The translations under genes and the position numbers were made by a program. The notes under the pieces are model-generated. The model searched no databases, was not told the DNA's origin, and worked only from the letters and a program-made list of their open reading frames with translations. A stretch of DNA of 28,438 bases, taken from Trichoplax adhaerens (lineage: Eukaryota > Animalia > Placozoa). Location: positions 5,066-33,503 of the forward strand of contig NW_002060968.1 in assembly GCF_000150275.1 (NCBI RefSeq). The letters are read 5' to 3'. Numbering within the stretch: the first letter of the stretch is position 1; each line of letters starts with the position of its first letter. Of the stretch, positions 2,272-28,396 are shown piece after piece.

Positions 2272-2413
2272 ATGAAAGCAAGAAAAGCCTACGCCTATTT
2301 ATTCGCTTTAATTTTGAGTATATTGCTCTTACTGAATTTTTGGAGTCATAAAAAAAATCAAGACCATTTTCAGAAGCAAGCTATTCAATCAAAGAATATT
2401 AATCTCAATCTAG
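2272..2413 (+). CDS. FUT8-like gene 1, exon 1 (cytoplasmic tail + TM signal-anchor)
   Basis: MKARKAYAYLFALILSILLLLNFWSHKK...; basic tail followed by a hydrophobic run, as in type II Golgi enzymes; phase-1 donor AG|GTAATG at 2413/2414. Confidence 0.8.
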
Positions 2414-3329
2414 GTAATGTCAGTATGTTAAATTGCGTTTCAGTACATAAGCGGTTGTTGTTGATATTACGTAGCATACTGTCGTAAAGCTTAATTCGAC
2501 TTTATAAATTAATCTTACCTATTGACATGCATTGCCATATAGTATTATCCATCAAGCTATCTACAGTAATAATTTTTAAACTGTATGTGTAGGTTGTGTA
2601 GGCTAATGTAGATGCTTTCGAGTAATGGAAAATTCTATGTTAGTTGGTGGCATTATTTTGGTATAATGCTGTTTGTCGGTAACGTTTACGTTTCTAACTG
2701 AGTGATTAGTTGAATTGGCTTCACTGGAGGATCTGCAAGTTTTACTTCTAGTTTCTAACAATATAGTAAATGCAAGAAGTCTGATATTATATCTCTTGAA
2801 CGTTTAACAACATTTTTTATAGCTATCAAAATGTATTTCAACAGTGCTGTAGACTAGATTACAATATAACATACAGAATATTCCCCTATGAGAAAAGCTA
2901 CGTTTTTAACAAAGATCATCTATGTCTAATAGAAAAGATCTAAATCATACAAACCACCTTAACAACAACATTTATTTGACAATTGCAATCTTAACGATCT
3001 AAATATGTCTGTAAATTCTAATAAATTAAATAAATTGAAAGTTATATGGTAGTACTGAAAAAATAGAGTGAAATAGCTTTAATTACATTTGCATATTTAA
3101 CATTTTATCTTCAATTTTGAACTATAATCAAATAAGGCAATAACTAAACCTAAAGTATTCAGCTTAGAAACTGATTCAGTAAATATGTTAAGTAAAGATA
3201 TCACTTTATATATTTTTCAGTTGAGTTATTTGACATTAATTCTTATTAGTAGTCTAGAACACTTGAACTTAGCGTCGCTTTTAGTATAAAAAGCCTTGTG
3301 AAAAGTATCGATTGATAATTTTATTAATA

Positions 3330-4452
3330 CTAGTGCAAACTCCCGTCGCTTTGCTGACGGTTTACGATAATGTGCTCATTTAACAGAGGTTCAGTAACTA
3401 TCAGATCGCTGACTAACGAACATTATCCTCTTAGAAATACTTTTTGTAATATGATATATAGCAATCAAAAATAACCGGGACAGGGGAACTATAGTAGGGT
3501 AACACTACGAATTGCAAGAGAGCAATAGAACTAAGAGTACCTACTGATGTGTATCAATCACTTTTCAAATTTCGTTAAGTAACTTTCGTATTAGTATGTT
3601 TACCGAATAAGGATGGTTACTATATACAGTATAGAAATCAAAAGTAATTGGGACAGGGGAACTACAGTAGGATAACACTACGAATTGCAAGAGAGCAATA
3701 GAACTAATAGTACCTACTGATGTGTATCAATCACTTCTACCTTCTCAATAATATTTACATAAATCCTAGAGATCATTCATTTCTATACCAATTCAAATTT
3801 CGTTAAGTAACTTTCATATTAGTAATCGGGACAGGGGAACTACAGTAGGATAACACTACGAATTGTAAGAGAGCAATAGAACTAATAGTACCTACTGATG
3901 TGTATCAATCACTTCTACCTTCTCAATAATATTTACATAAACCCTACAGATCATTCATTTCTATACCAATTCAAATTTCGTTAAGTAACTTTCGTATTAG
4001 TATGTTTACTGAATAAGGATGGTTACTATATACGGTATTAATGCTATAGTAACAGTAATATACTATGCTATATTAAGATTAGTTAATGGTCCAGAGCACA
4101 TTACGATAACTAATGTACGGTGATGGACATACCAAGTTAAGATTAGTAGGTACTGTAAGATATCGACAGTGCGGTAGAATGTCCTTCGTACTGTGGTCAA
4201 TTCTATACCAATCATTATAATGTGTCTAAGAATCGCTGTCGTATGCAAGCAAAGCTTGCTCTGTCGATAAAAACCGTTATAAGAAAATGTAACAATCAAA
4301 ATGGCTGTATAGAAAACTCTATAAAGATTCTATGTTTATTCAATTTTCATCAGAATATTACATGAAATCAAAATTGAAAGGCCCAGTGGCCACCCTTAGC
4401 GATATAACGAATACTATTTTAATAATCAGTACTCTGCAGAAATTACTACCTT
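3330..4452 (-). mobile_element. Non-autonomous Helitron-like element, copy 1 (in gene 1 intron 1)
   Basis: Minus-strand 3' end reads hairpin CCGTCAGCAAAGCGACGG, 9 nt, CTAG|T. Colinear with 22231-23217; homology stops at AATTACTACCTT. No clean 5' TC terminus seen. Confidence 0.75.
3470..4050. repeat. Three tandem units inside Helitron copy 1
   Basis: GGGACAGGGGAACTA..GTAG..TAACACTACGAATTG starts at 3477, 3650 and 3828 (periods 173 and 178); only one unit in copy 2 (22498). Confidence 0.9.
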
Positions 4453-4516
4453 AAATTAAACTTTCTATACACATTTTACTTATAAACATACATAAAAATC
4501 AACTTTCATTATCTAG

Positions 4517-4608
4517 CAATGACCGCGAGAGCATTTACCTTAAGTACTGATCTTCGATCAGATCATACCACGAGAAGAGCTATGGCGATCAACTTCAAAG
4601 CTTCCTTG
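4517..4608 (+). CDS. FUT8-like gene 1, exon 2 (stem)
   Basis: Acceptor TTTCATTATCTAG|; open frame (A)MTARAFTLSTDLRSDHTTRRAMAINFKASL; donor TTG|GTAAAA; phases 1/0 join exons 1 and 3 in frame. Confidence 0.75.
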
Positions 4609-4700
4609 GTAAAATTACTTATTAAACAATTTATTATTTTTTATTTACATTCGTTCCACTAAGTTCTAATATTTCATATTACTTCTATTAATATTATTAG

Positions 4701-6068
4701 CAGCAACATAGTTGTAGTAGAAAAATAGAAATGGTGCGAAAGCGTCTCGACTACATACAAAATCCTAATAATTGCTCTATGGCTAATAAAGTCATATGTG
4801 ACATTAAGAGAGGTGGTATGGGCTCAACTGTCCATCATTGGGTATTTTGCTTGATGTACGCTTACTACACGAATCGAACCATGCTGATAGATAAAAGAGT
4901 ATGGGCGTATTATCGAAATGTTACTGGTGTAGATGGTGTCCAACATTTCGAAGATGTATTCCAGCCTATTTCTAAGTGTAAACTTTCCACTGAAGATGCC
5001 AAAAAGGCTATCAAATGGACGAGTCGTATTTATGACAAAGACTTAGCTAAAAATAATTCTGATAAGATTCCACAGATTATAAGATTGCAAAGAGTTGGGT
5101 TGCTATATCAAAATTTTGGTAAAGCACCTGCAATTTGCCGATATGGTATGCCGAGAAAACTATTTTACGATGTTGTTCAATATAAATGTGATCCTGTAGC
5201 TTGGTGGATAGGTGTTCTAGCCCAATACATAATACAACCTAGTAGTGACTTAAAACAATTGATAGATCAATCTCGAAAAGAATTCAAATTTCAATCACCT
5301 ATTGTTGGTCTACATATTAGGCGTTCTGATAAAAAAACGGAGAACGAAATATTCGATATTGATCGATATATGATTAAAGTGAATGCATATTTTAATGGTT
5401 TATCTAAGCGCAAAATCATTATTAAAAGACGAATATTTGTAGTTACTGATGAACCATGGCTTATTGATCGATTAATTACAAAGTATCCACATTATGAATT
5501 TATTCATCCTCCGGAAAAACAATTAACAGCCGATACCAATACTACAAGATATTCTGCAATTAATTTAAGATTTTTTCTTCGCGATTTATACCTGCTAGCC
5601 GAATGTGATCATTTAGTTGTCACAATGTCATCTAACGTGGGTAGACTTGCATACGAATTACATGAAGTTATTTATAGTCAATCTCGAGGTCGACATTTTG
5701 CATCGCTTGATTCAGATTATCATGTTTTCGGATTTGCTGCTAGCGGTGAAGGTCCATGGATTATGCAAGCCAAGAAAGATTGCGCTAGCAATGGGTCTGG
5801 TACTATTGATTTACTCAAGGGAGATTTGTTAGATTCGTGTGTATCCATAAAGGAAAAGAAAAACATAGTCTATGGTTATCTTAAACGTTTAAAAAAGTTC
5901 GGACACTTCCATCAATCATGTCTTTATTACCTTGCAGATAATCAAGACTATCCAGATTATAGCAAATCAGACGGATGGTATCAGCGGCATATACCTGATA
6001 TGAAAAGAATATCTACATTAGGAAATATTTGCATGAAATCGTCGATAACTGACATTGGTGTAATATAA
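4701..6068 (+). CDS. FUT8: Alpha-1,6-fucosyltransferase-like (GT23/FUT8-like) gene 1, catalytic exon 3
   Basis: [15 protein letters not shown], motif [10 protein letters not shown], motif II IFVVTDE, motif [30 protein letters not shown]3-like tail ending YPDY. Model join(2272..2413,4517..4608,4701..6068) = 533 aa. Divergent paralogue; orthology to FUT8 not established. Confidence 0.92.
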
Positions 6069-9000
6069 ATTTACTCTATAAAAAGTATCCCATAAGTGAG
6101 ATACTACGTTGGTTAAAATGAGAATTTTTTATAGTCATTTAATAGTTACTTACTGTTCAAGGGGCCATTCCAGTTTTAAACTACATGTGTATTAATTTCT
6201 TTATTTTATAATTATAATTGACCTCATTTGAAAATGCATTAGTGCTGTATATTGTAAACCAGACTTTTTATATTTTAGGTTAGAATTTATGATAATCAGT
6301 ACCATAATTTTTTGTTAAGATACTGTGAGTTTGTAATTCAAGCGATGTACTCGTATTTAGTCAATCGAATAAATATGTGCTAATTTTGATCATTAATTAC
6401 AGTAGAACATAAAAGTTACTTTATAACTATGCTACTTTTTTTGACATTAGCATTGACAGTTGATGTTTTAGCGTGAAGTTGTACGATAACTGTACGATTA
6501 TAGCCAACATTATAGTGCTTTACTGTCATGTTATAAATCTCCTTTCTCTGTAGATAGAAATTGTACNNNNNNNNNNNNNNNNNNNNNNNNNNNNNNNNNN
6601 NNNNNNNNNNNNNNNNACTAAAAGATTTTGTGACTTTCTAGGTATTTTCTATAGTAAATTAAAATAGTTACATACTAAAAGCTATAAAGAACTCTGCTTT
6701 TAGTCCTTTAATACACTATATTTGAACATTTTGCATTATAATTAAATTAATGTAGATGAGCATTTAGAATACATTGTGTTGTTATAGATCACTTATTTAC
6801 GTGACTCTCATCGGTAAAATTTATGCTTTCTGTAGCTTCTACTTCGTATTAAGTTAGGCTATTATAATTAGTAAATAAAATCACTTCCCAGTACACAATT
6901 GCAAATTTCTAGCATAATATCGTATCTTCCATCTTATTATAGAAATTTCAAACCGGTTAAACGTAGAAAGCATGAAATAACTTCAAAGTTATCCGTTAGT
7001 ACCATATTGCAGCTAATAGCAACATTTCGCAATAGGTCATATTTCATCGCAGCGCAGCGAGGATTCTGACGTCTATACAGCGCCTCTAGTACTTACATGT
7101 TTACTGTATTTGAATTCGGCCTTTTGTTAATATGATCATGACTAGCGCTATAGGTGGTATTGTTCTGTATCACTATTTAAGAGAATTTTATGAATAATTG
7201 TCACGATCAAATTAAAGAAAAGCCTAGCCAAGGTGACGAGAATCTAAATATAAGTTGGAAATTTGCATTGAGGCACATAATGCTCATCCATCTGCATTAT
7301 CTACGTTATAACTGATCTTTTCATTCAGTTATTCGTTCCAATATACGCGTAGTCTATTAGAACCAGCCCATGTGGTATATTCCAGAGCAGGGACATAGTC
7401 TGGGCTGTTACCCGGTACCAGTTAGAACACATAGAAATGGTTATGTTTGGCTCTTTATTAATTTAGTGCAGAGGTTCAGAAGTAGCCGGATTTATAAAAT
7501 TAAAAAGTGGGATATTCTGTATCAGTGAGTAATTCCGATTTATTTTTTATGAAATAGTTGGACTAAGCGAATAATTCTAGAGCTTTTGCGTATTTGTTTA
7601 ATTAATCTGTTAACGTTTATAAGTCCATTCGAAGCTATTCGTTAATGGCGATAAATCATGGCTTTTTCATTACTACTTTTTTTCATGTTATGTTAGACAA
7701 TATTCATCTCTATTTCATAATTTAGAGGCTAAAGTCCAGTATACATAGAGATAGAATACTTTTCATTCGAATTTGTATTAGAGTTTTCTAGTAGGTGGGA
7801 TACTGATGCACGTAAGTTTAAGTATTCATGTGTTTCAAATCGAAATTTGTAACGAGGAAAAGTTAAAACTATTATATAAATTATTCTACGAGTCTACCAT
7901 CAGGTTGTTCTCCCTGACATTAACCTACAGTACGACTCTAAATACCGATGATCACCTATCATCAGAAGGAACAGTAACACCACTAATCTCTCTTAGACTT
8001 AACTGAACCCAAACTTTATTGAAAAATTAGTTAAATTATAGTGAATCGATATTAACATAAATTATCAGTTTCTTGATAATAATATAAAACTATACAATTG
8101 TCTATTAAAAATATGTAAAACTTCAAAGATAGCGGTATGTAAATACATTCCTAGAAAGATTATCTTATGAAATCTATGTTACGATAGCTACGTAAAAGTT
8201 ACTCCGTAACAACATGTGATTAAAAGCGCTGCCGCATCTCTGGACAAACAGCACAGTTCTGATATTTGGTCTTCCTGAGACCAAAATTTGCTACATGAAG
8301 CGGCTAGTTTTCATGATAATTAGCTTAAACAAGAGATCATTGCTAGAAGTTCAACTACATTTGATGTAGCATTAGAACCATTTATCGAAAAGTAAAATAA
8401 TGCAATTTATTATCCGTAAAATATGTGAAAAATAATCTGATAATAATTTATTAGGGAATAGACGTAGATTATTTGATTCTGGGTTGAGCGAAGAAACTGC
8501 CTATTTTTTCAAAATTTAGGGATGAAACTCGAACCAGAAATACCTCCTTGAAATGTAGAATTGATAACACTACTTTAAGTAAAGAAGCAGTTCAATTCAA
8601 TAATACTATCCATAATTAACATGCAATTATTATTGATGTCTTATTTCACTAGTTATGATCGACATTTTTCCTACCAACTTCATAGTTACAATAGTTCTAC
8701 GAAGAAACGATATACGAAATAGCAGAACACACAACCAGAACAAGATGATTTCTAGCAGATCGTCAAATACTATACAGAATAATAAAATACTTTATAATCA
8801 TTATTAAAATAGGATGCATAGCATTATTGTGTTTACATACGACAAGAAGCTTTATACTAGTCATAAAGATTATCATATGAGCTTCCTAAAGATTTATTAT
8901 GAAAGGATTGATATGCCAACATCAAACGATGCAATCTCCTATAGAACAACAGGGATTGCAGCTGCCCGAAGGTCTTGCTAAGGGTGTTATGCTATTAAAT

Positions 9001-10272
9001 ACAGGTGTAGTAGCGGGTAGAATATTTTACAAGAGAAGGATCATTTTGACATTATAGGAAGTTAGTCATATTCATTAGATATTGACCAGGTTCGCCTAAT
9101 CTTCTGTAAACATCATAGTACACCAATAAATAGTTTTCTCTCCCTATAATTTATTACTTGACTATTTCGCTATGAAAATAATCATAATTTCTTTCTCAAC
9201 TCTATAGGGCCTTTAATTAATTATTAAATACGTAAGATCAATTTAGTAGACACTAGAATAACAGCTTTTGTTAATAGATATATAATTAATAGCATTAGTT
9301 ACGGTATTGAATATGAAGTTTATTTCTTGGCTTAAAGCTGTTAATTTAGCGTAGAAATAACTGCTAACTACTGATACTGTTAATAACGTTTAATTGAGTT
9401 CGGAGAAGCTGATGGGAACCTCGACTAATGTACTGTATTTTACGTCTAATTAAACTGATATACCGCAATGGGAATCTCTAGTGGCTTAACTTGCGTCCTT
9501 TCATTCGCACTTCGTTTACATTAATGAAAAACCATTGTTAACTTAACTTGCGTTTTTTCCTTAGTACATCTGATCCTACTAAAATCCGATCTCGGCTAAT
9601 GCAAACGTAATAAAAATGTGGAATTAATTCTTTGGGAAGACTGCATAATAATAGATAAAATTATTAATACCAGTTGTTTCTCTGTTAGAGCGAGCATGTT
9701 CGTATTAAACTGCTCGCATTTGTATGATTAAGTAGGTAATCATCTTAATGATGCGATACATATGATATAATTAAAGTATTACAGTCGGATATTACTGAAC
9801 AAATTACAACATTAACAGCCACTTTAGGTACCACCGCAGCGAAGATAATCAAACGGCATCCACACTTTAGCAGTGATCATCCAATCTACTCATATGACAG
9901 CTGTATCTGAACTTTTTACAAATGTTGAAATAAAACTTATCCAGTCTTAATGAAATATTTTGTAGCAAATTAATAATCCGATCCCAATTTTTTATACACT
10001 ATTTCAGATTATTACCGTACTAGCAGTATCAACAAAGCGAAGAGGTAATGCATATTGTTAGTAAAAAAGAATACGTATAATTTTCATTACTAGTTTACAA
10101 AGTGATCCAATCTTATGCATGAAGCTGCTTAAATTTTATTGAAAACTCTCTAAAACAATCTCATTATGTTTGTTTAGAGTATGATAAAGTCATATTCGTA
10201 ACAGTATCGATGATTCATATGTCATATTATAGAAGTCATACAACATGATCATTATTACTATAACTATGGACC

Positions 10273-10302
10273 ACTAAAAGTACCTTCGAAGGTATTTTTA
10301 GT
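10273..10302. repeat. 30-bp near-perfect palindrome
   Basis: ACTAAAAGTACCTTC|GAAGGTATTTTTAGT, one mismatch, no spacer. Confidence 0.85.
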
Positions 10303-10604
10303 AGTTTATGCCATTACAATTTATACAGATACTGTACATTGTATTTTACAGTACGATATAGTAAAATCTCAGTACATTGTACTGTGTCGTATTTCGCATG
10401 TTGGATGGAGCGATTGAGTTTGCTCAGAAGTAGTTCTGTCATCAAAACAAGATGGCTTCCGATGCTTACTTAAAATGGCGATAGGCCACTGGGGAATAAT
10501 AAAATTTCGTTTAAATTTAGGCCATTTAGTCCATTTGAGGATAGTCTAAACTGTAGTGATGATGCATTTTGAAAATCTTAGCAAAGCTGTTTTTCGATAT
10601 GGTC

Positions 10605-11146
10605 TAACGTACAGTATTACAGATGGCTACAGATTGTACCATTATCAGTTCTTCGGTTCCAATCTGTATTACTGCGTACCGTAAGTCTGTACTGAAGTAA
10701 CGCCGGCAGAGTTACACAGTACGTACTGTACAGTATAGTGCAGTACTGTAACGCAGTGTACAGTACTGTACGGTACAGTACGCTGTACTGTACAGTACAG
10801 CACAGTAAGCACAGGGCTTCGGATTCGGAAGCTCGAGAGTGGCAAGAAAGTAAGGAAGTCATTTAGTCGTTTAGCAATTTTGCCCCTATGCTTCTTACTC
10901 TTCTTCTGAAAAGCGTTTCCGCTACAGTACAAATGAGACTTATGTATACAGTACAGTACAGTACAGTACTGTTACATGTCGTTACGTAGTGCATTATTAA
11001 TAACGGGGGATATGCATGGTTAGTTACACAGTCTGTGCAGTACAGTACAGTACACTGAGTACAGTATAGTGTACAGTACTACAGGACCACTTTCTGTTGG
11101 TACAGTACGTTGGTACCATAAATTCGAAATTTCCCGCATCTCCCTG
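10605..11146 (-). repeat. GTACA/TACTG pentamer-rich interspersed repeat (probable transposon relic)
   Basis: Clusters of (CAGTA)n at ~10715-10805, ~10945-10970 and ~11035-11110; 24-nt end motif (11123-11146) shared in opposite orientation with 1937-1960. Left boundary uncertain. Confidence 0.65.
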
Positions 11147-11404
11147 CAATTGGAATCCAATGATACCATTTGATTGTGAAATGACTGTTAACTGAATTGT
11201 ATTCAAGCTTGATTTCACTTATAAGATTACTATATGCTGTTACAACATTTGATACCATATTTATATTGCTAACTACATAAAATAACCAACATCAAGATAT
11301 CGCAATAGCCACTACTTCTTTTCTTGGCTGGAATAAATGTTATCCTATCACTATGAAATGAACATCTCATTGGATAAAATATAATTTAAAAGTTCTCATC
11401 CACC

Positions 11405-11558
11405 ATGCGATTAAGAAGTGTCTTTGCTTATGGGTTCACTTTGATTACGTTCATATCCTTGCTGATTATCCAGCCTTATCTATTAATATGTCTCCAATAT
11501 AAGCTAAAACATATCCCAATTCAAGACACTGAATTGAAGAAAATCAAACCAAATTCTG
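11405..11558 (+). CDS. FUT8-like gene 2, exon 1 (tail + TM)
   Basis: CCACCATG start; MRLRSVFAYGFTLITFISLLIIQPYLLICLQYKLKHIPIQDTELKKIKPNS; phase-1 donor TCTG|GTACTA, homologous to the end of gene 3 exon 1. Confidence 0.85.
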
Positions 11559-11710
11559 GTACTACACATTGATATAATTAGACTGATCTACGTTGAAGCA
11601 TATAATTATTCCGATTTATGAGTTTATAGATAAAGTGTTAGAATTTAGAGACTTAGATAAGAAAATAATTATCTGCTTAATTCTTTATTTTAAATTTTAT
11701 TGCATATTAG

Positions 11711-11799
11711 TAAAAACTACAGCGTTTGATTTGAATTCTGTATTTCCATCAAGTTATACAATGAATACGCCTACAACAGCCAACCAGCAAACTCATTCG
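11711..11799 (+). CDS. FUT8-like gene 2, exon 2 (stem)
   Basis: Phase-1 acceptor after a T-rich tract (alternative in-phase AG at 11721-11722); ...MNTPTTANQQTHS; donor TCG|GTAAAA. Confidence 0.7.
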
Positions 11800-11895
11800 G
11801 TAAAAGTTATTATTAGCTATAGCGATTAATCCATTTTTAATTATACTCTGTCTATATAAAACTAACATTTATCTTACTCTAATTAATATCAACAG

Positions 11896-13254
11896 CAAGA
11901 TAACTGCATGAGCCTAACTCAAAAGCTCCGTAATCGCCTCGACTATATACAGAATCCTGACGATTGCTCTACTGCTAAAAAAATTATATGCGATCATAAA
12001 GAGGCTGGTATGGGCTCGACAATCCATCATTGGGTTTATTGCTTGATTTATGGATACTATACTAATCGAACGATGCTGATAGATACAAGTAAATGGTCTT
12101 ATTTACGAAATGTTATTAGTAAAGATGGGGTTGATCGTTTTGAAGATTTATTTCAGCCGATTTCCAAGTGTAGACTTACCGCTCATGATAGTAATGCCGC
12201 TGTTGTATGGGAAAGTCCTAATCCTAATAATATCGTTAACGGTAAAAGCGATCCTGAATTGATCCCACAAGTTATAAGATTGCCAAGAGCAGGCATTCTT
12301 TTCCAAAATCTGCCCGAGGCACCACCCGTTTGTAATTATGCTATGCCTACAAAACTATTTTATGACATTTTGAATTTTAAGCATAAACCTATGGCTTGGT
12401 GGATTGGTACTATAGCGCAATATCTTATACAACCTAACGATTATCTACAAAAGTTTATCGATCAATCTCGCAGCAAATTCAAATTTCAGACCCCTATCGT
12501 CGGTCTACATATTAGACGTACCGATAAAGTATCCGAAAATGAGTTATACGACATTGATCAATATATGATTAAAGTAGACGAATTTTACAATCGTTCAGCC
12601 GAGTACAAAATAAAAAGACGAGTATTTGTAGTAACTGATGAACCTTGGCTAATTGAACAACTAATTACAAAGTATCCCAAGTACCGATTTATTCATCCTC
12701 CGATAGAACAGTTAAAAGCCGGTACATATACGACGAGATATTCTGCCGCCAATTTAAAATATTTTCTTCGAGATGTATTTCTACTAGCTGAGTGTCATCA
12801 TATAGTTGGCACTATGTCATCTAATGTCGCCAGACTTGCATACGAATTACACGAAGTTATATATAATAAAACAGAAAGTCAACATTTTACATCACTTGAT
12901 ATAAAATATCATATATTTGCATTTGCTCCGAATCGGATTGGCCCATGGATTATGCGAGCCAATCAAGATTGTTTTAGTAATACATCTAATACTATCGATC
13001 TACTTGAAGGAGATATACTTGATCCTTGTGTACCTACGGAATCAAAAGAGCTGTACTACGGTTATTCTAAACGTTTACAAATATCAGGAAATTTTCTTCG
13101 ATCTTGTGTTACTCATCTTCTAGATATTATAGACTATCCAGATTATAGTAAAGTAGATGAATCATTTTATTGGGGTGAGATCGACGTAAACAGAACATAT
13201 TCATTAAATAATATTTGTACTAAGTCATCAATAAGCGACATTTACGCCTTATAA
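11896..13254 (+). CDS. FUT8: Alpha-1,6-fucosyltransferase-like (GT23/FUT8-like) gene 2, catalytic exon 3
   Basis: [46 protein letters not shown]3-like tail, YPDY. Model join(11405..11558,11711..11799,11896..13254) = 533 aa. Confidence 0.92.
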
Positions 13255-13779: not shown

Positions 13780-13811
13780 TATATATCGACTAGTAAACTA
13801 GTCGATATATA
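13780..13811. repeat. Perfect inverted repeat, 15-bp arms
   Basis: TATATATCGACTAGT-AA-ACTAGTCGATATATA. Confidence 0.9.
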
Positions 13812-15937: not shown

Positions 15938-16051
15938 TCTTGCCTTTTTGTATCTTTGATAATTATAATCAATATTATTAAGTATAGGAACGAATAATAA
16001 GAAGAAAACAATCTAAATACAATATGCAAATTTAGTCAAAGGATCAAATAA

Positions 16052-16540: not shown

Positions 16541-18028
16541 ATAAATAGAGTAAACCTAGACTAATACGTATGAGACACATTAATACCAAAAGCTATACAA
16601 TTTATTTTCTATATCTAAACGAAACTTTAAAATACGTAATCTATCTTATTTATATTAATTTATTCGTATAGGCCTTCCGCCTACTTCATAGAATAGATCA
16701 TTCGATAATTGATGAATATAGAGGCTTAATATAATATATAATAGAAGAAGATTTCCCTAAAATGTAGACCGCTCCCATATCTATTGCTGTGATTATAACG
16801 TTAAAAGTAACTCGCCTCTTTTACAGCGATGAATCAATGCCTTTGTATGATTTGCAATAGGTCATAAAGCGCCATGCTGATACTCCGAATTAGTTGTATC
16901 CAATCTGAAATTTCGTCATTTAGGTGCTGGCTCTTACTACTTTACAAGCTATTTGTCATCAATGTACCGACTTAATAAAATGTATTCATTCTATCTTACA
17001 GCTCTTGCAATTAATCATCATGCTTTCATCAATGCTATCCTATCCAGGAATATTTTTGACCCAGCTCTCCCGCTGCGTATTTTATGAAAAGCTAAATAGA
17101 GAGATGATGAGACAGAATCGATTTTGTATTCATGAGATTGAATAAACCTAGCATTATGAAAGCTTCCATTCAATAATGCCACGCTAGACGATTTAAAATG
17201 CCTTATCGAATAAAAAGATCACAAATTTTGGCTTAACTCGGCGATTACATTAATCCATAACTCTTGTTCAATTTCTAGTAATATAATATAGTGTAGATTT
17301 CAGCTGAGGCAAGCTAAAGATAGAGTAGATATTACTTAACGTAATATTTTGTTCTAATTTGGAGTGTTTAATACAGTTTGAAATGCTCCAATCTTAAACT
17401 GCTAACTTGTACGAATTTCACTTAATTGTACGAATGTAACATAATTTATATCTCCAGTCATTTCTCGTAACGTAGAGTATCTTGTCTTCGGTAAAGCTTC
17501 ATAAATTAAAGATTAGATATTCTATTGAAGAAAGATTACCCGACACAGTAACTTCATAGAATAAAATTGCAAATCCTTATGACACCATTGGTACTTCTAC
17601 AAACATTGGAATAGTAAATTTACCTCATTTTATTGCAAAGGAAACTGTAACCCTTCGATATCGACCTTACAAAGTTATCAACTTGGCTTATTTTTCCATC
17701 GACGATAATAACAAATAATATCCATCAACAGCGAGGTAACTATCTAATTGGATCGTATCCAAGCTTAAAGTCCACAACAAGTAGCATCATATAAATGATT
17801 TCCTTTGATCTACACGTATTGGATCGCATCGAAGCTAATATCCATTTATAAGATTGTTCTGTACTGATACACTTTTTGTATCATTTACTGCAAAATCTAA
17901 CTATAAAGATTTTGCGATACTCTTTAACTTCTCTCTCTTCTTCGGTTTCAACAAGTGGTGCGCTATCATCGTAACATCTCATTAGGTCGTCTCTCAACTT
18001 AAAATCCATTCCAAGTTCCTCATCGATC

Positions 18029-18176
18029 ATGTTGTTAAAAAGTTTAATTACTTATGTGGCCATCTTAATTGTGGTGATGTCCTTGTTGCTTCTCTACCGT
18101 TATCAATTGATTCGCTATAATTATGTCTCTATCAAAATTCCAGACCCTGAATTTAAGAAATACAAAGCAAATTCTG
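18029..18176 (+). CDS. FUT8-like gene 3, exon 1 (tail + TM)
   Basis: MLLKSLITYVAILIVVMSLLLLYRYQLIRYNYVSIKIPDPEFKKYKANS; phase-1 donor TCTG|GTACGT. Confidence 0.85.
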
Positions 18177-18749
18177 GTACGTTACATTGACATAATTTAG
18201 AATAGTCCATGTTAATGCATGTAATTGTTCCAATTTATTAATGTAGATATAGGATCAGAATTTAAAAACATAAGTCAATCATGGCTAATAGTACGACACT
18301 TTAAAAAGGAAATACAAGTGTTAATTCCTTTATTATCTGTACTCGCTAGTGAATATGTTATTCTATTACGCAATTTATCCTCATCCTAATATCGTTTAAC
18401 TATTTACATCATACAATATAAAGATCACTACTCATTACTGAACCGATAAAGTACTGAGTTACAGTTTTAATTTAAGAGTAAAAATTTACTCATTGATCAA
18501 TAGGCAATCTTAATAATAGGCTAAAGCACATCCTAATCATTTGCAGTATTCCGTATGAAATTATACCATTTGTAATTTTTTAAAACAGTTTCAGTCTTAT
18601 ATATCTCATGCATTAGATTTGTTATGTTATCTGAGTTGGCAATCTGGACTATATAAGCTACAATCTAAAGTATAAAAATTTCTGTGTCATTATATAATGT
18701 AATAGCTTCTAGTAAATCTATAACTATAATTACCTTCATTTCTTACTAG

Positions 18750-18784
18750 TACCCACTACAACGGCCAGCCCGCAGACAGTTTCG
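18750..18784 (+). CDS. FUT8-like gene 3, exon 2 (35-nt stem micro-exon)
   Basis: Acceptor CCTTCATTTCTTACTAG|; (V)PTTTASPQTVS; donor TCG|GTAAAA; resembles the 3' end of gene 2 exon 2. Confidence 0.7.
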
Positions 18785-18883
18785 GTAAAATTTTACGAAC
18801 TAAAACGATTAATACTTTTGCGATTGTACTATATTAACGTTTTGCTACTGTTTTTTTTGTCTAATTCTAATTAATATTCACAG

Positions 18884-20239
18884 AAACAAAGCTGCATTGA
18901 ATTTACAGAAATGTTTCGTTATCGTCTCAATGCCATACAAAATCCTAAAAATTGCTCTACTGCTAAAAAAATAATATGTGGCCATCATCGGGCGGGTATG
19001 GGCTCGACAATCCATCATTGGGCTTATTGCTTAATTTACGCATACTATACCAATCGAACTATGCTTATAGATACAAGTAAATGGTCTTATTTACGAAATG
19101 TAATTTCCAAAGACGGTGTTGATCATTTTGAAGACTTTTTCCAACCAATTTCCAAATGCAAGCTTACTGCTCATGATGCTAAAGCGGCTGTTGTATGGAA
19201 AAGTCGTCTTCCTAAAGATTTTGCCAACGGTAGTAATTCTAATAAGATTCCTCAGATTATACGATTGAAGAATGTGGGATCCGTACTTGAAGATTACCAC
19301 ATAGGGCCGGCCATTTGCAATTATGCTATGCCTGAAAAACTATTTTATGATGTTATGAAATTTAAAAATAAACCTATGGCTTGGTGGATTGGAGTTATAG
19401 CGCTATATATTATACAACCTAATCATTATTTACAAAAATTTATTGATCAATCTCGTAATGAATTGAAATTTCAGAGTCCTATCGTTGGTATACACCTTAG
19501 ACATACGGATAAAGCATTCGAAAGTAAATTATTCAATATTAATCAATATATGATTCAAGTCAATGCATTTTATAATCGCTTAGCAAAACATAAAATCAAT
19601 ATTAAAAGACGCGTATTTGTAGTTACCGATACACCAAAGTTTATTCCTCAATTAGTCACAAAGTATCCTAATTATCAATTTACTCATCCCCCGATTAAAC
19701 AATTAAAAGCTGGTACATTCACTTCGAGATATTCCGCAACTAATCTAAAATACTTTCTTCGAGATTTATTCTTACTGGCCGAGTGTGATTATTTAATTTG
19801 CACTATGTCATCTAATGTCTGTAGACTTGCATACGAATTACATGAAGTTTTCTACGATCAAACTAAAACTCAACATTCTAAATCACTTGATGTAAAATAC
19901 CATGTATTTGGACTTGCTCGAAATCAGGTCGGCCCGTGGATTATGCGAGCTAATCAAGATTGTCCTAGTAACGCATCTAATGTTATTGATCTAGGTAAAG
20001 GAGATATACTTGATCCTTGTACACCTACAGAATCAAAAACGATGTACTATGGTTATTCTAAGCGCTTGAAAATATCAGGAAGTTTCGCTAAATCTTGTGT
20101 AACTCATCTTCTAGATATTGTAAACTATCCAGATTATAGTGAAATAGATAAATTTTTTTATCGGAGTAAGTTGGATGTAAACAGCACATATGCTGTCAAT
20201 ACTACTTGCATTAAAACGTCGATAAATGATATACGGTAA
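18884..20239 (+). CDS. FUT8: Alpha-1,6-fucosyltransferase-like (GT23/FUT8-like) gene 3, catalytic exon 3
   Basis: [46 protein letters not shown]3-like tail, YPDY. Model join(18029..18176,18750..18784,18884..20239) = 512 aa. Confidence 0.92.
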
Positions 20240-21900
20240 TTATAAATCCGTAGTATAGATAGACTTCAATTACAAGCATTTGCAATGAAGGTTAATTTTT
20301 AGAGTTTTCCTTCAAGTTCTTTTATTGTAATTGTTCTAGTTTAGTTTTTGTATCGTGATAAGTATTCTTACTTTAAAAATATGACTTACTTGGTTGATTA
20401 TAATAGTAGATTTTACTTGGTATCTTAGTATATTGTAAACCTGACTGCTTCATTTGGGTTAGAAGCTAAGATAATCCGTTACATAATTTTTTCAAGAATC
20501 AGATATTATGATTTTATAATTCAAAAGATATATTTAGTTGATAGAATATATGTGTTACTAATTTTGATCATTAATTACAGTAGAAGTTAATGTTACTTTG
20601 TAATTTCGTGCAGTATGAACCCAAACACTTGATCTGGGATTGATATTTTGTCTTAGTGTATACTGTAGAAATGTACAGTTGCAAGCTAAACTATACTTAG
20701 TACTAATTTAGTAGTTTTCGGGAGTCTAGGGTATAATTTATCTTATCATGTGTGTTTGGTTGCTAGTTTAATTTGGATTACTTTAGAATAATAGTTAGAT
20801 AGTCTAATACCGCCAACTGCTCTGCTTAGCATATAATAGGTGGCGTAGTTCGGTAATTTAGCGCAGTTAAAGTTAGAGAAGGCAAGAAAAGTCTAGAATA
20901 ATCCTGAGTTATCTCATTAATCGATAGTTTGGTTGGTTGGGGCAGCGGTTCTGCCCGTATTTTTTATTCATTTAAGAATTTTTGCCAAGATTATTGTTAA
21001 AGTTATAATAAACTGGTGTTTTCTCCCTAATTTATTTTATTTGGACTTCTATGTTTGGTATTTCAATTTAATATTAGTAAAATTTTATATTTTTGTCAAC
21101 CAATACTACTCATAGTAATTGATATTTTTATTAATTATGGATGATTGCAATCGAAGTCTATTTCAGAATTCTCCTTCATATATTATCGTAGAAATATGGA
21201 TCATTTAGAATAAGTAAATCGAATAAGGATAGAGAATATGTATAACTGTGATGATTGGTCACTATCACGAAACAGCTTTGCGACAAGATAACGTAATGTA
21301 CGATCATAAGTCAATTCCTTGAACCACGTATCAAGGAACGATATCTGCGCTATTAGGAACACTTTTGCTATACCAGCAGACTACACAAAGACTTAGACGC
21401 CTCGCATTTTACGTTAAACACTAAGTTTAAGAATTAACTTTATTACATGATATACCACATTTATATACTCTTACTCAATAGTTCATGATTCATAGTTAGT
21501 ACGATTAACTTTGGAATCATTCACTGAATAAGACCTTAACTTTAGCTACTGCTCCCTAATGCCGATAACAGTATTTACGAACATAGACATTCTGGTGACT
21601 AATAAAGAATAAACAGATTACGATATGTCCTATCATGGGACATTTCCACGATAATTTACAATCTACCATAAGTAAGTTATAATCATAATGATTCGAATTG
21701 TAAGTAGATAATTTACGTTCCCTAATATAACTATTAATTTCAATATATGTATATAACATATATATATATATATACTGCATGTCACTGTCATAAAAAGCCA
21801 GTGCTATATTAAAACACAGTATATACAAATTAGAAGTTAACTAAATAAGGATAGGCTAACAAAATTATCCTTACATAAATATTTCTACTCTAATACAGCA

Positions 21901-22032
21901 TTATTACATTTAATTTAAATATTATTTCTACGATAAAATGAACTTTAAAGAATTACTCTGTACAGTCACATACAGAATTATTCTTTATAGTTCTTTTTAT
22001 CGTAGAAATAATACTTAATTTAAATGTCATAA
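21901..22032. repeat. 132-bp fold-back (MITE-like) inverted repeat
   Basis: 62-bp arms (21901-21962, 21971-22032), 7 mismatches by my count, 8-nt loop CAGTCACA. Confidence 0.85.
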
Positions 22033-22230
22033 GTTAATCAATATTAGGTTAGAGATGATCGTTCTAAGATTTATGTTTAAGCATATATATCTATATTTGC
22101 ATATTGCCGTCGATATCTATTGAATTGCCATTAAGAATAGTGTTTAACTCGTTTTTTTTATTTCGGTAATAATTTTAGCAGTCCACAGTACATCAGATAA
22201 ATACGAGAGTAATAACTGTTTTATAGTAAA

Positions 22231-23217
22231 CTAGTCCAAACTCTCATCGCTTTGCTGACGGTTTACGAAAATGTACCCATTTGTTAATAATTAACAGATA
22301 GTATTACCATTCGACATTATATATATCCTGGTAATAGCCGGGTACTACTATATTTAAAACAGATTGATTTAATGTACGTACTGATCGTGCATTTCCACGT
22401 TGTTCACTTCGCTTTCGCCTATCAGATCGCTGACTAACTAACATTATCCTCTTAGAAACACTACTTGTTATATGATATATAGCAATCAAAAATAACCGGG
22501 ACAGGGGAACTACAGTAGAGTAACACTACGAAATGCTTGAGAGCAATAGAACTAATAGTACCTACTAATGTGTATCAATCACTTACACCTTCTCTATAAT
22601 ATTTACGTAAACCCTAGAGATCGTTCTTTTCTATACCAATTCAAATTCCCTTAAGTAAATGTATTAGTATGTTTACCGAATAAAGATGGTTACTATATGC
22701 AGTATTAATGCTATGTTAAGGTTGGTAAGCGAAACTGTCAAATATACGTTTATGCTCAATTTATTAATAAAACTAACAGATAGCATTATCGTTCGATATT
22801 ATATATATTCCGGTAATAGTAATGTACTATGCTATATTAGTTAATGGTCCAAAGCACGTTACGATAACTAATGTATGGTGATGGACAAATCAAGTTAAGA
22901 TTAGCAGGTACTGTAAGATATCGACAGTGCGGTACAATGTCCTTAGTACTGTGGTCAATTTTATACCAATCATGATAATGTGTCCAAGGATCGCTTGCGT
23001 ATGCAAGCAAAGCTTGCTCTGTCGATAACAACCGTTATAAGAAAATGTTACAATCAAAATGGCTGAGTAGAAAACTCTATAAAGATTCTATGTTTATTCA
23101 ATTTTCATCAGAGTATTACATGAAATCAAAATTGAAAGGCCCAGTGGCCACCCTTAGCGATATAACGAATACTATTTCAAAAATGAGTACTCTTTAGAAA
23201 TTAGAAATTACTACCTT
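22231..23217 (-). mobile_element. Non-autonomous Helitron-like element, copy 2
   Basis: A|CTAG end with a slightly mutated hairpin; colinear with 3330-4452. Confidence 0.75.
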
Positions 23218-23489
23218 TGGAGCTATTCGTTTTACATGAAGAAATCTTGAGGTCAAAAGTACTGTAAGAATCTTATGCAGACCTATTGAAATCAACCCAT
23301 AATCAAAGTCATCTAACAGTAGTATAAATACCCCCGTGCTGCTTGATAATAAATGANAAAATAATTAAACTCATTTACTATTGAGGAGTTTATCTCGTTA
23401 TTCGTGAATATAAATGACTCTTGAGTACTATTGAACTCATTTACTAATGTGGAATTTATCATGTCATTTCACGATGCTATTGATACCAT

Positions 23490-23859
23490 AAATAGTATNC
23501 ACGCTGGACATGATGAATACATGTTCTGTCTATCACGGCAGGTAGCTATTTTAATGATGACTCTTGTCAAGTTTAAGAATGAATAAGACGGGGAAATAAA
23601 AATCCAAATATATTAAGTAAAGCTGAAGAATAAACGATGCTACTCAAATCTAGCATATAGCTATTAAAATCCCTTAAATAGTATCTATGCTGGACAAGAT
23701 GACTACATACTGTGTCTATCATGGCAGGTAGCTATTTTAATAAAGATTCTTGTCAAGTTTAAGAATGAAGAAGAAGGGGAAATAAAAATCCGAATATATT
23801 AAGTAAAGCTGAAGAGTAAACGATGCTACTCAAATCTAGCATATGACTATTAAAATCCC
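23490..23859. repeat. Tandem duplication, 186-bp period, just upstream of gene 4 exon 1
   Basis: GCTGGAC...GGCAGGTAGCTATTTTAAT...CTATTAAAATCCC starting at 23503 and 23689. Confidence 0.9.
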
Positions 23860-23930
23860 TGTAGCGTTTTGAATAACTTCATTTCCAACTAATTAATTCG
23901 TCCAGACTATCATCGAGTTAATAGTCCACC

Positions 23931-24093
23931 ATGTTTGGCATGCAGAAAAAACGGTACTGGTATATCTGCTTGCTTGTTTTAGCCATAGGGACGCACTAGC
24001 TCATTTTCTATCGTGGCCACATCTTTTCTTCCTACTTTCAACCTCGGCAAGTTGGCACAGTGAAGACATACACCATCAAACCTGTCGATGGCG
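23931..24093 (+). pseudogene. FUT8-like gene 4, exon 1 (tail + TM) with in-frame TAG
   Basis: CCACCATG; MFGMQKKRYWYICLLVLAIGTH*LIFYRGHIFSSYFQPRQVGTVKTYTIKPVDG; TAG at 23997-23999; phase-1 donor G|GTAAGC; size (163 nt) and phase match the other first exons. Confidence 0.7.
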
Positions 24094-24592
24094 GTAAGCA
24101 ATACTATTATTTCCATTCATCCATGGAGTTAGAAACTGTAGAGAAGTGCCGTGAAGACGATTAACCATCATACCAAGACGTAGCAAAGTTACAGAAATGA
24201 CCGAGTAAATGTTGATACGTTCAACTACTGTAGTATCCTGGGCATAGATTGAAAGCCATCAATGTTGTTAATAACTGTTACCATGTGCAACTTTGTCTTA
24301 ATTACAGGAGTTTCTGAGCAGACTTGAATTTGAGGTAATTTTGTAGTCCATGTGCTTATACGATCCCGGAAATAACATAAATTGAACCAATCATGAATTG
24401 TTCGTACGTCCGTACAATGTCCTCAAATAACGATCATTAGTAGTATCAGTGACGCTAGAACTATACTAGTATATTCGGTGATTGGAACTGAACTATTGGG
24501 TGATAGCTCATTTCGTCTCTTTAAATCTGTAAGAGACGTCNNNNNNNNNNNNNNNNNNNNNNNNNNNNNNNNNNNNNNNNNNNNNNNNNNCT

Positions 24593-24893
24593 CACAAAGA
24601 CTTAGACGCCTCGTATTTTACGTTAAACACTAAGTTTAAGAATTAACTTTATTACATGATATACCACATTTATATACTCTTACTCAATAGTTCATGATTC
24701 ATAGTTAGTACGATTAGCTTTGGAATCATTCACTGAATAAGACCTTAACTTTAGCTACTGCTCCCTAATGCCGATAACAGTATTTACGAACATAGACATC
24801 TGGTGACTAATAAAGACTAGACAGATTACGATATGTCCTATCATGGGACATTTCCACGATAATTTACAATCTACCATAAGTAAGTTATAATCA
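24593..24893 (+). repeat. ~300-bp copy of 21384-21685
   Basis: Direct alignment with only a handful of differences; begins right after the N gap. Confidence 0.9.
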
Positions 24894-25001
24894 CTAGTGC
24901 AAACTCCCGTCGCTTTGCTGACGGTTTACGATAATGTGCTCATTTAACAGATAGTATTACCATTTGTCGTACTCAGTAGACCTGTCAGAGGTTCAGTAAC
25001 T
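24894..25001 (-). mobile_element. Helitron-like element, copy 3 (3'-terminal fragment)
   Basis: First ~57 nt identical to copy 1 (CTAGTGCAAACTCCCGTCGCTTTGCTGACGG...); junction falls at the A|T of the empty site 21685/21686. Confidence 0.75.
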
Positions 25002-25045
25002 TTATACCGTGTACTGTGTACTGTATGCTGTACAAATGCACGGTA

Positions 25046-25346
25046 TGGGCATAGATTGAAAGCCATCAATGTTGTTAATAACTGTTACCATGTGCAACTT
25101 TGTCTTAATTACAGGAGTTTCTGAGCAGACTTGAACTTGAGGTAATTTTGTAGTCCATGTGCTTATACGATCCCGGAAATAACATAAATTGAACCAATCA
25201 TGAATTGCTCGTATGTGCGTACAATGTCCTCAAATAACGATCATTAGTAGTACCAGTGACGCTAGAACTATACTAGTGTATTCGGTGGTTGGAACTGAAC
25301 TATTGGGTGATAGCTCATTTCGTCTCTTTAAATCTGTAAGAGACGT
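25046..25346 (+). repeat. ~300-bp copy of 24239-24539
   Basis: Ungapped alignment at offset 807 with about seven substitutions. Confidence 0.9.
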
Positions 25347-26580
25347 TCTTCGTTAGCGTTTGAATGTAATTAATTACAGTTGATACCAAGCTATGAGCGA
25401 TATCGCACTATCGTACCCATTAGTAATCCCTATCCTAATTCTACAATGACAACACGCAGTTATGCCATGCTCACTTTGATGGACTAGCTAGGACTCCAAG
25501 TTATTCTCAATTATTCTTATGCTGGATCTGTTGCTTATGAAGCCTGGGTTATGAGGACTTCCAGGTGTTACAGAGGCTTGCTATCGATTCTACATAACAC
25601 CCAACGGTATCATCCGTCGTCGAGAGTAGAAATAGTGCAGAGCCTACAGTATGACTCCAAAATGGCTATGGTTGGATTATATAGAAGAATCACAAAAGTT
25701 ACGAGTTCCAAATGTTGGCAAGGCTTACTGTAGATTCTGCAGAAACCCTACTGATAGAATCCGCCGTCGAAAGTAGAAAAGCCGCCGGTTGTTAAGGGAG
25801 GAAGGGTTGGGGATAGTAGTCCATGCAGTGTGTACGAAATAAACTTAATAAGAGGCTACTAAAGAACCAACAATTCCTACAGTATGACAGAGAATAGCGA
25901 TGTTAGGACCATAAGGAAGAACCACTGTAGTTAGGACTTCCAAGTGCTGTACAGTATTAGGAAAGGGTTCAATCTTACCCTTTGTTTTGCTGGGGTAAAT
26001 TGATCCCCTATCGTTAATAATTTAATTCAGTATAGGCGCTACCTGCTTGCCAACATCATCATTGCGATAACTCAATGACAACGTTATAAATCAAAGCGTC
26101 TGCTCAGCTTTACCAAAATCATTTATATCTATTCTTAGTAACCTAACTATATCAAATATAGCTATATAATCCTTATAATCATATATGGGGTGAATCACTA
26201 CACCGCCATCATTGCAATAACTGAATGAAAATGTTTAAAATCAAAGTGTTTACTCAGTCATATCAAAATTTTTCCGTATGTATGCCTTATTGATGGAGCC
26301 TCAAGAGCATATATTGTTAGATTGAATTTGTCGTTATGCAATAACCTGTACTATAACTCAATAGCTGTATGGTATATACGGATGGTATAGTTTCTCTATA
26401 AGGCTATATGCTTATGATCATTGCAATTTCAATTAGAAATTCAACCAGGAATAGAGATAGACGACTACTATGGCTTTAGGAACAATTGAAGAAAATAGTG
26501 TAGCTTTACATAGCTGAAGTAAGAAATAAACTAGCTATGCACCTTTACCATAACTAAAAATTTTAAATCCCCATCTTTAG

Positions 26581-26942
26581 TGAATCCAACACCAACATTA
26601 AAAAGTCAATTGCCTTATTCTAAAGCAAAGTTAACCGAAAAGTCAACATCTACATCTATCCTAGCATATTCTACATTGAAATCAACATCGACATTAAAAC
26701 CTGCTTCGAGATCCATTCCAAATACGTTGGAGCTGGATATATCAACATCAATATTAAATGAAAATAACAATATTTCAACTCCAACATTAAAAAGTCAACT
26801 GCTTCATTCTGAAGCAACGGCGATCGAAAACCTAAAACCGAATTCAAGATTCACTCCAGTTACATCGAAGCTGGATGTTTCGAAAACAATGGTCAACATA
26901 TCAAATAATGTCAAATTAAATCAAACATCAAGTAAAATATAT
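26581..26942 (+). pseudogene. FUT8-like gene 4, exon 2 (long Ser/Thr-rich, mucin-like stem)
   Basis: Acceptor CCCCATCTTTAG| (phase 1), donor TAT|GTAAGA (phase 0); ~31% Ser+Thr; internal repeat PTLKSQL at 26592 and 26781. Confidence 0.75.
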
Positions 26943-27046
26943 GTAAGAAAGTTATAGCCATACTTTAATCTTGAAAATTACGGATTAGTTGATATCCCCT
27001 CGTGGTGATTTGATTTATTAACTAAGTTCGATTACTATTGTTACAG

Positions 27047-28396
27047 CCAAGACAATGCCAAGATTTGACTGAAATTGTTCGAAATCGTCTCGATTATTTA
27101 CAGAATCCAGCTAATTGCTCCACAGCTAAAAAACTGATTTGTGATGTTTGGGGCGCAGGCATGGGTTCAGTGGTTCATCACTGGGTCTGCTGCTTAATAA
27201 TATATGCATATAATACTAATCGTACAATGTTTATTGACCTAAGAGAGTGGCCTTATTTGCAAGGCGTTACATCGAAGGATGGTGTAAAACACTTTGAAGA
27301 CTTATTTCAACCTATTTCCAAATGCAGACTTACCGATTATGATAATAAAACAGCAATAACATGGCCTATATCGAAAAGCCAACTAATTTATAACCATAAT
27401 ATATCTGTTATTCGAATACTAGCGATAGGAAAAATATATCTAGATAAATTAAAATTACCCCAAATTTTTCATTTTGCATTGCCTACAAAACTCTTTTATA
27501 GGACGATCGACTTTAAATATCAGCCAATAGCTTGCTGGATTGGTCTGTTAGCCAAACATATTATACGACCAAACGATACTTTACAACAATTTAGTGATCA
27601 ATCGAGAAAGAAATTCAAATTTCAATCACCTATAGTTGGTCTACATATCAGGCGTACGGACAAAAGAACTGCAGCCAAAATCTTTAATGTTGATCAGTAT
27701 ATGGTAAAAGTGAAGGCATTCTTTAATCGGTTAGCTAAGCAAAGTATCCAAATCGAAAAGCGGGTATTTTTAATTACCGATGAACCATGGCTTATTAATC
27801 AATTAATTAAAAAGTATCCTGATTACCATTTTATTCATCCTCCAATAAAACAATTAACGGCTAGTACCTTTACTTCAAGATACTCGGCAATCCACTTAAA
27901 ATATTTTATTCGAGATTTATTTCTCTTAGCTGAATGCGCTTACTTGGTAGTCACTATGTCATCTAATGTTGGTAGACTAGCATACGAATTACATGAAGTT
28001 ATTTATAGCCAAACAAAAAGCAAGCATTATACTTCTCTCGACGATGATTATTTCATACAGGGACTGTATAGGAACCTTCAAGCCCCCAAAATTATGCAAG
28101 CTAATCAAGATTGTCGTAGTAATATATTGAATGGAATTAGTATCGTTGAAGGCGATCTATTAGATTCCTGTATATCTTCTAACCATTCGAATACCATGTA
28201 TTAAGGCTATTCTAAACGTTTAAAAAAATCAGGATATTTCCTTCGATCTTGTGTAACTTACTTAGTCGATAACGAGGTGTATCCAGATTATAGTGAAGTA
28301 GATAAAACACTACATTGGGATGAAACAGATAGATATCAAGCAAATAGTGAGGATAATGCTTGTACTAAATCTTCGATAATAGATAGAATTTATTAA
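27047..28396 (+). pseudogene. FUT8: Alpha-1,6-fucosyltransferase-like (GT23/FUT8-like) gene 4, catalytic exon 3 with premature stop
   Basis: [30 protein letters not shown]; TAA at 28202-28204 replaces the Tyr of MYYGYSKRL; homology continues in frame for 63 codons (GYSKRLKKSG...YPDY...ACTKSSIID) to TAA at 28394-28396. Confidence 0.85.

Follow-up and report, generated by a model that had tools for sequence, protein, structure and literature searches.

A tandem array of FUT8-like GT23 genes in the placozoan Trichoplax adhaerens, with conserved donor residues and divergent acceptor contacts

Known GT23 fucosyltransferases and the Trichoplax array

NodZ, a rhizobial member of glycosyltransferase family GT23, is an α-1,6-fucosyltransferase that uses chitin oligosaccharides as acceptors. 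Animal FUT8, the other GT23 enzyme considered here (structures 2DE0, 6TKV, 6VLD and 6X5H), has type-II topology and a GT-B fold followed by an SH3-like domain. This work concerns a 28,438-nucleotide stretch of the genome of Trichoplax adhaerens (C1389:5066-33503, hereafter the window), in which four FUT8-like genes, copies 1 to 4, stand in tandem; the assembly searched comprises 105.6 Mb in 1414 contigs. Judged from its sequence, the window is probably the central part of a tandem array of GT23 genes restricted to placozoans, the intact copies of which would be active enzymes with non-canonical acceptors. Literature searches (GT23 with placozoa; fucosyltransferase expansion in Trichoplax; TRIADDRAFT locus tags) found no paper on this subfamily.

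A scan of the window for open reading frames (ORFs) returned four on the plus strand (4731-6068, 11908-13254, 18911-20239 and 27038-28204), all of which match the Pfam family FUT8_N_cat (PF19745, CAZy GT23) over profile positions 184-499, with E-values from 4e-73 to 7e-78 (1.4e-74, 6.9e-78 and 7.2e-75 for copies 1, 2 and 3) and scores of 247-263 bits against a curated cut-off of 27.6 bits. The starts of successive catalytic exons are spaced at 7.2, 7.0 and 8.1 kb, the array genes are all FUT8-like and on the plus strand, and a tRNA scan of the window found none. A sequence-only reading had described four same-strand GT23 paralogues spaced at about 7-8 kb, which agrees with this result for the window itself; the array, however, has at least five members and the family about ten loci. 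The fifth copy (TRIADDRAFT_32882) is intact and lies at about C1389:50.7 kb, 18 kb downstream of the window. Copies 1-4 are 56-69% identical in protein and 68-77% identical in DNA, figures that indicate true paralogues rather than assembly duplicates. The domain, structure and database searches used the large exons, exons 1 and 2 were read directly from the sequence, and copy 4 was translated through its stop with an X at that position.

The array proteins have in common with animal FUT8 their Pfam family, the succession of GT-B fold and SH3-like domain, and type-II topology. The donor and catalytic residues H363, R365, K369, E373, D453 and S469 are identical in the intact paralogues. Of the disulfide cysteines, C204, C212 and C230 persist, and one column from C266 stands another conserved cysteine. 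An AlphaFold (AF2) model of copy 2 exon 3 (predicted local distance difference test score, pLDDT, 83.5; predicted template-modelling score, pTM, 0.88) has a GT-B fold and an SH3-like β-barrel, and its best Foldseek match is human FUT8 6TKV (E 1.5e-37, TM-score 0.70, 429 columns); the sequence of copy 2 matches human FUT8 structures in the PDB with an E-value of 5.5e-54, in an alignment that reaches into the SH3 region. The paralogues are about 33% identical to animal FUT8, they have no coiled-coil stem, their acceptor contacts are replaced and vary, and they have lost the cysteine pairs C218-C222 (all paralogues) and C465-C472 (all except copy 3, which alone has both cysteines), while gaining five conserved cysteines and a C-terminal extension of about 35 residues that ends in C-x-K-x-S-I-x-D. 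No Pfam match to an SH3 domain was found in copies 1-4 at E ≤ 0.01. The genes are also tandem and multi-copy, with the catalytic and SH3-like regions in one exon that lacks the conserved fut8 introns; the canonical introns, among them the one after ...PIVG at profile position 362, fall inside this continuous exon. The sister copies of copy 3 carry Val/Gly or Gly/Ala at C465/C472, and this suggests that copy 3 has regained the canonical pair.

The sequence-only reading had named the lack of a separate canonical FUT8 as a finding that would count against it, but the Trichoplax genome has such a gene (TRIADDRAFT_49632, C1414:4769906-4772075, four matched exons, best E 1e-117), which is the T. adhaerens fut8 treated by Juliant et al. 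(PMC4204859). This gene belongs to the same genome and family as the array and is 32-35% identical to the array copies, but in the tree it falls among the FUT8 genes of cnidarians and bilaterians (support 100/98), apart from the array, and it has every acceptor contact, the eight tabulated cysteines, a Pfam SH3_9 domain, a coiled-coil stem and the conserved introns.

NodZ shares the GT23 donor motifs with the array proteins, matches their fold (Foldseek E ~4e-7) and provides a precedent within GT23 for an acceptor other than the N-glycan. It differs in having neither membrane anchor nor SH3-like domain and is far more distant than FUT8; the cut-off of the NodZ Pfam family (PF05830) is reached by copy 3 only, with 35 bits (E 8.6e-9) as against 253 bits for FUT8_N_cat. 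Divergent GT23 genes beside FUT8 are also annotated in individual animal lineages, namely Clavelina, Styela, Oppia, Oppiella, Ruditapes and Aquatica, although these tunicate, oribatid mite, bivalve and firefly paralogues are at most about 38% identical and fall outside the placozoan clade. The earlier assumption that FUT8 is normally single in animals is therefore not universal, given the FUT8-like paralogues annotated in tunicates, mites, bivalves and a firefly, and extra GT23 genes are not unique to placozoans.

Donor and acceptor sites

The contact residues of human FUT8 were taken from the paper on its GDP/G0 complex (PMC7033129) and mapped by way of a 575-residue salamander FUT8, the numbering of which equals the human at 23 of 23 checked positions. 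Y250, H363, R365, K369, E373, T408, D453 and S469 are retained in all intact paralogues of the residue table, as is A436, apart from a Gly in one placozoan-like relative. Copies 1, 2, 3 and 5, like every intact relative, have donor motifs I-III with Arg365, Lys369 and Glu373. Among the paralogues, the entropy of the donor columns is 0.17 bits compared to 0.95 bits for matched columns (P = 0.0002), so that the conservation of donor-binding motifs claimed from sequence alone holds, save for the catalytic Glu of copy 4, which is lost.

The acceptor side is quite different. K216, G217, D295, Q470, D495, Y498 and H535 are invariant in the tabulated canonical FUT8s, from vertebrates to Trichoplax, whereas copies 1-3 have Gly for D295, Asn for Q470, His or Phe for Y498 and Glu for H535, and the positions of K216, G217, D495, Y498 and H535 vary from copy to copy among the paralogues. 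Acceptor columns have a mean entropy of 1.71 bits among paralogues, as against 0.82 bits for matched columns (P = 0.002), in keeping with the marked divergence outside the donor motifs that had been noticed. A donor site that is kept beside acceptor contacts that are replaced and copy-variable fits acceptors other than the canonical one. The earlier suggestion of non-canonical acceptors is consistent with the residues to this extent, but the acceptors themselves stay putative.

If the conserved residues are a guide, the intact copies would be active, GDP-fucose-dependent, inverting fucosyltransferases, most likely forming an α-1,6 linkage to a GlcNAc-like acceptor, and each copy would probably act on a different acceptor, other than the canonical biantennary N-glycan core. 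A bolder version, which we put forward tentatively and consider rather doubtful, is that the intact copies make up a natural panel of GT23 α-1,6-fucosyltransferases, each with a different acceptor outside the N-glycan core; such acceptors might be GlcNAc on O-glycans, of mucin type or other, or oligosaccharides resembling chitin, as for NodZ. Were this true, it would amount to a second, independent class of animal α-1,6-fucosylation, diversified in placozoans by tandem duplication. The array itself already shows, in one of the simplest animals, one unchanged FUT8 beside a radiating subfamily with the donor site fixed and the acceptor surface varied. Activity on new acceptors would reveal fucosylated glycans not yet known in placozoans, and would supply natural variants for studying the part played by the FUT8 exosite and SH3 domain in acceptor specificity. 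A paper on Trichoplax mucus reports that the trails bind WGA strongly, PNA faintly and no other lectin of the panel, UEA included; this is read here as silent on α-1,6-fucose. The functions in mucus, host-microbe contact or self-recognition that the sequence-only reading had suggested find no support in these results.

Several observations weigh against the reading of the intact copies as active enzymes with non-canonical acceptors. The alignment is less certain near positions 295 and 535, where identity is low. The C218-C222 pair that all paralogues lack lies next to the donor site, and copy 2 has His at Asp461 (AECHHIV), as does its orthologue in Trichoplax sp. H2, whereas canonical FUT8 invariably has this Asp and most other paralogues have it too. 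The paralogues lack the coiled-coil stem, their match to the Pfam profile starting at position 184 or later. Finally, the loss of acceptor contacts could instead reflect core fucosylation that has become looser or weaker, with no change of acceptor.

This last point leads to the alternative that the paralogues are redundant or tissue-specific core α-1,6-fucosyltransferases, which we judge unlikely. Such enzymes would be expected to share the fold, the catalytic triad and the SH3-like domain, as the paralogues do, and D494 is indeed kept in all copies and D495 and H535 in copies 4 and 5; but nearly all paralogues have other residues in place of Q470 and of K216 and D295, the two that hold the reducing-end GlcNAc, the acceptor-contact columns vary significantly more than matched columns, and the genome keeps an unaltered canonical FUT8. 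Should the paralogues be ordinary core fucosyltransferases after all, the array would represent a routine lineage-specific gene expansion.

Intact copies and a pseudogene

Copies 1-3 have intact ORFs with canonical splice sites. Their pairwise ratios of non-synonymous to synonymous substitution (dN/dS, NG86) lie between 0.27 and 0.37, at dS of 0.68-0.85, and by this measure copies 1-3 are shown to evolve under purifying selection; for copy 4 versus copy 5 the ratio is 0.59, at a dS of 0.06. Comparison of Trichoplax strains H1 and H2 gives 100% identity for copy 2 and for the canonical FUT8, and 99.8% for copy 3 (against H2 P0301).

Copy 4 has an in-frame TAG at 23997-23999, within the anchor, where copy 5 has Leu, and a TAA at 28202-28204 where a conserved YYGY would have its second Tyr, beyond which the frame is open to 28396. 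It also has Ala for the catalytic Glu373, Cys for Trp in the AWWIG motif, and one inserted residue. A signal-anchor scan initially missed the anchor of copy 4 because the anchor exon carries a stop, and the exon was located by way of copy 5. The H2 orthologue (P0007) ends at the same TAA, yet retains Glu373. Thirteen residues differ between the H1 and H2 forms, and with copy 5 as outgroup all 13 changes arose on the H1 copy. On these features copy 4 is a pseudogene, and the earlier description of three live genes and one dying stands, with copies 1-3 intact and copy 4 carrying two in-frame stops and Glu373Ala.

That the paralogues as a whole are catalytically dead, be they decaying genes, pseudoenzymes or proteins of a lectin-like kind, is much less probable. 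Copy 4 clearly is, fragments and pseudogenes occur elsewhere in the genome, and a dN/dS of 0.27-0.37 speaks of just moderate constraint; against this, copies 1, 2, 3 and 5 and the relatives from another placozoan-like organism conserve all donor and catalytic residues, ORFs and splice sites are intact, and copies 2 and 3 are nearly identical between strains, compared to the 13 residue differences of the pseudogene.

Gene structure

A common three-exon plan, with an anchor exon that ends in phase 1, a stem exon that ends in phase 0 and a large exon, is found in all four copies (Table 1); that the copies share one exon plan had been noted in the sequence-only reading. The large exon 3 begins just ahead of a conserved cysteine and encodes the catalytic and SH3-like domains. 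The stem exon is short and Thr/Pro/Ser-rich in copies 1-3, where its donor G|GTAAAA is conserved, and mucin-like, with 120 codons, in copy 4. The predicted products of the array genes are type-II membrane proteins of the Golgi, in which a signal-anchor is followed by a stem that is short or mucin-like, a GT-B domain of the FUT8 type and an SH3-like domain that has been remodelled.

Exon junctions are predictions, except for those of copy 2, which the H2 protein P0302 (533 residues) supports: it is 100% identical to the 448-residue ORF of copy 2 (11908-13251), has the same three exons, and reads ...KPNS-VKTTAFDLNS...QQTHS-QDNC... across the junctions. The H2 model P0007 joins ...SSKIY to QRKCQDL at the copy 4 exon 2/exon 3 site, and on a contig of another placozoan-like organism a Ser/Thr-rich stem exon is split from the catalytic exon at the same phase-0 site.

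Table 1. Exons of the four FUT8-like copies and assembly gaps, in window coordinates
Feature	Position	Strand	Description
Copy 1 exon 1	2272-2413	+	Start codon and hydrophobic signal-anchor; donor AG|GTAATG, phase 1; predicted from ORF/hydropathy scan
Copy 1 exon 2	4517-4608	+	Short stem, phase 1 to 0; predicted from three-copy upstream alignment and frame reading
Copy 1 exon 3	4701-6068	+	GT23 catalytic, SH3-like and C-terminal extension; intact; R365, K369 and E373 present
Assembly gap	6567-6616	.	Intergenic, 499 nt past copy 1 stop, in the copy 1-copy 2 spacer; spanned by no coding feature
Copy 2 exon 1	11405-11558	+	Signal-anchor, phase 1; agrees with N-terminus of H2 protein P0302
Copy 2 exon 2	11711-11799	+	Thr/Pro/Ser-rich stem, phase 1 to 0; acceptor site from H2 model P0302
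Copy 2 exon 3	11896-13254	+	Catalytic and SH3-like; intact; partly annotated as TRIADDRAFT_2213
Copy 3 exon 1	18029-18176	+	Signal-anchor; donor G|GTACGT, phase 1
Copy 3 exon 2	18750-18784	+	35-nt Thr/Pro-rich mini-exon, phase 1 to 0; predicted
Copy 3 exon 3	18884-20239	+	Catalytic and SH3-like; intact
Copy 4 (pseudogene) exon 1	23931-24093	+	Signal-anchor with in-frame TAG; aligned to intact copy 5 exon 1
Assembly gap	24541-24590	.	Within copy 4 intron 1
Copy 4 exon 2	26581-26942	+	120-codon Ser/Thr-rich mucin-like stem; ORF and splice sites
Copy 4 exon 3	27047-28396	+	Catalytic and SH3-like; premature TAA, Ala for Glu373

Phylogeny and distribution

A GT23 phylogeny of the kind that had been proposed as a check (IQ-TREE, unrooted), covering homologues from this genome and its placozoan-like relatives together with FUT8, separates the paralogues (100/99) from a canonical FUT8 clade that includes the Trichoplax gene (100/98). 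Copies 1, 2 and 3 make up a group confined to Trichoplax, the gene on scaffold C1396 joins copies 4 and 5, and the gene on C1402 has orthologues in the other placozoan-like organism. In a larger tree the tunicate-, mite- and bivalve-type paralogues are placed beside the placozoan clade, with weak support and long branches. Trees in which the paralogues were constrained to join placozoan FUT8 were rejected (approximately unbiased (AU) test, p = 0.016, for a group named after the tree had been seen and with long branches involved), so that a simple recent birth of the clade from the canonical placozoan FUT8 is not favoured. The birth-and-death expansion proposed earlier is supported: copies 4 and 5 are 92.8% identical in DNA over 3.4 kb, non-coding DNA included, and fragments and pseudogenes lie elsewhere. 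The family probably grows and shrinks through local duplication, decay and fragmentation.

In a search of 1.84 billion representative proteins, only placozoan-type clusters score 280 bits or more, after which scores drop to 191 bits or less, and the paralogue clade is limited to Trichoplax and one or more placozoan-like organisms, the relatives coming from ENA sample ERZ27263980 and Logan runs. The same ENA sample also has a canonical FUT8, 71% identical to that of Trichoplax. Beyond the clade, the closest sequences belong to FUT8-like paralogues from tunicates, from mites and from one bivalve. A 432-bit firefly match in this search is a four-domain fusion of ordinary FUT8-like units; this 1615-residue model from Aquatica leii (P0143, KAK4886686.1), with its four FUT8-like stretches, may be a tandem FUT8 array fused by annotation.

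The wider family and the assembly

Outside C1389, paralogues, fragments and pseudogenes are spread over four scaffolds. Single intact paralogues are found on C1402 (TRIADDRAFT_60023) and C1411, C1407 has one pseudogene, and on C1396 lie a disrupted gene, the stem of which is long and Ser/Thr/Lys-rich, and fragments 96-99% identical to copies 1 and 3. The C1411 gene (L008, C1411:8058052-8062065) is very divergent, at 27-32% identity to everything else; it is a single intronless ORF of 503 codons, anchor included, which keeps R365, K369 and E373, and its relative P0185, from a Logan run, is 66% identical. By its sequence it is a second placozoan GT23 offshoot, of retrogene-like structure.

That the array is itself an artefact, with haplotypes or collapsed repeats set in tandem, is hardly credible and was rejected for copies 1-4: the region is hard to assemble, with large N runs flanking the window on both sides, a C1396 scaffold tail that is a patchwork 96-100% identical to pieces of the array, and a gap (24541-24590) between duplicated sequences, but copies 1-4 share just 68-77% of their DNA sequence, copies 2 and 3 stand on uninterrupted sequence, and H2 holds separate orthologues of copies 2, 3 and 4, with one H2 model spanning copy 3 and the copy 4 stem exon. 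In that public model (P0301, RDD36205.1) the copy 3 orthologue contributes its catalytic exon and the copy 4 orthologue its Ser/Thr-rich stem exon; the annotation is chimeric, yet it shows that copy 3 lies next to copy 4 in H2. The two gaps leave all exons untouched, and no exon relies on continuity over either. On the two sides of the gap in copy 4 intron 1 stand the halves of a 301-bp direct duplication (24239-24539 and 25046-25346, 97.7% identical) that looks like an assembly overlap, and at the gap past copy 1 the similarity to a near-identical C1396 piece stops at 6426, short of 6567-6616.

The patchwork at the tail of C1396 occupies the scaffold end (C1396:1317474-1364312), around a 15.9-kb N run. 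One fragment in it, similar to copy 1, contains an inverted junction, and another (TRIADDRAFT_61042) is similar to the C-terminal part of copy 3. The tail may be the other haplotype, an error of scaffolding or a second cluster that has degenerated. The H2 orthologues of copy 2, of the C1396 gene and of the TRIADDRAFT_61042 fragment have consecutive accession numbers and lie on one 104-kb contig.

Two further elements of the window lie between or within the genes. Copies of a young dispersed repeat, which has a 178-bp internal tandem duplication, occupy 3319-4445 (copy 1 intron 1) and 22219-23203 (upstream of copy 4 exon 1); for a 397-bp piece of it the genome offers at least 157 candidate locations, of which 40 were scored and proved 93-100% identical. 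Directly upstream of copy 2, on the minus strand at 10617-11258, Thr-Val-Leu-Tyr-rich ORFs arise from an imperfect 10-bp tandem repeat (GTACAGTACT, 10719-10807) and are probably non-coding.

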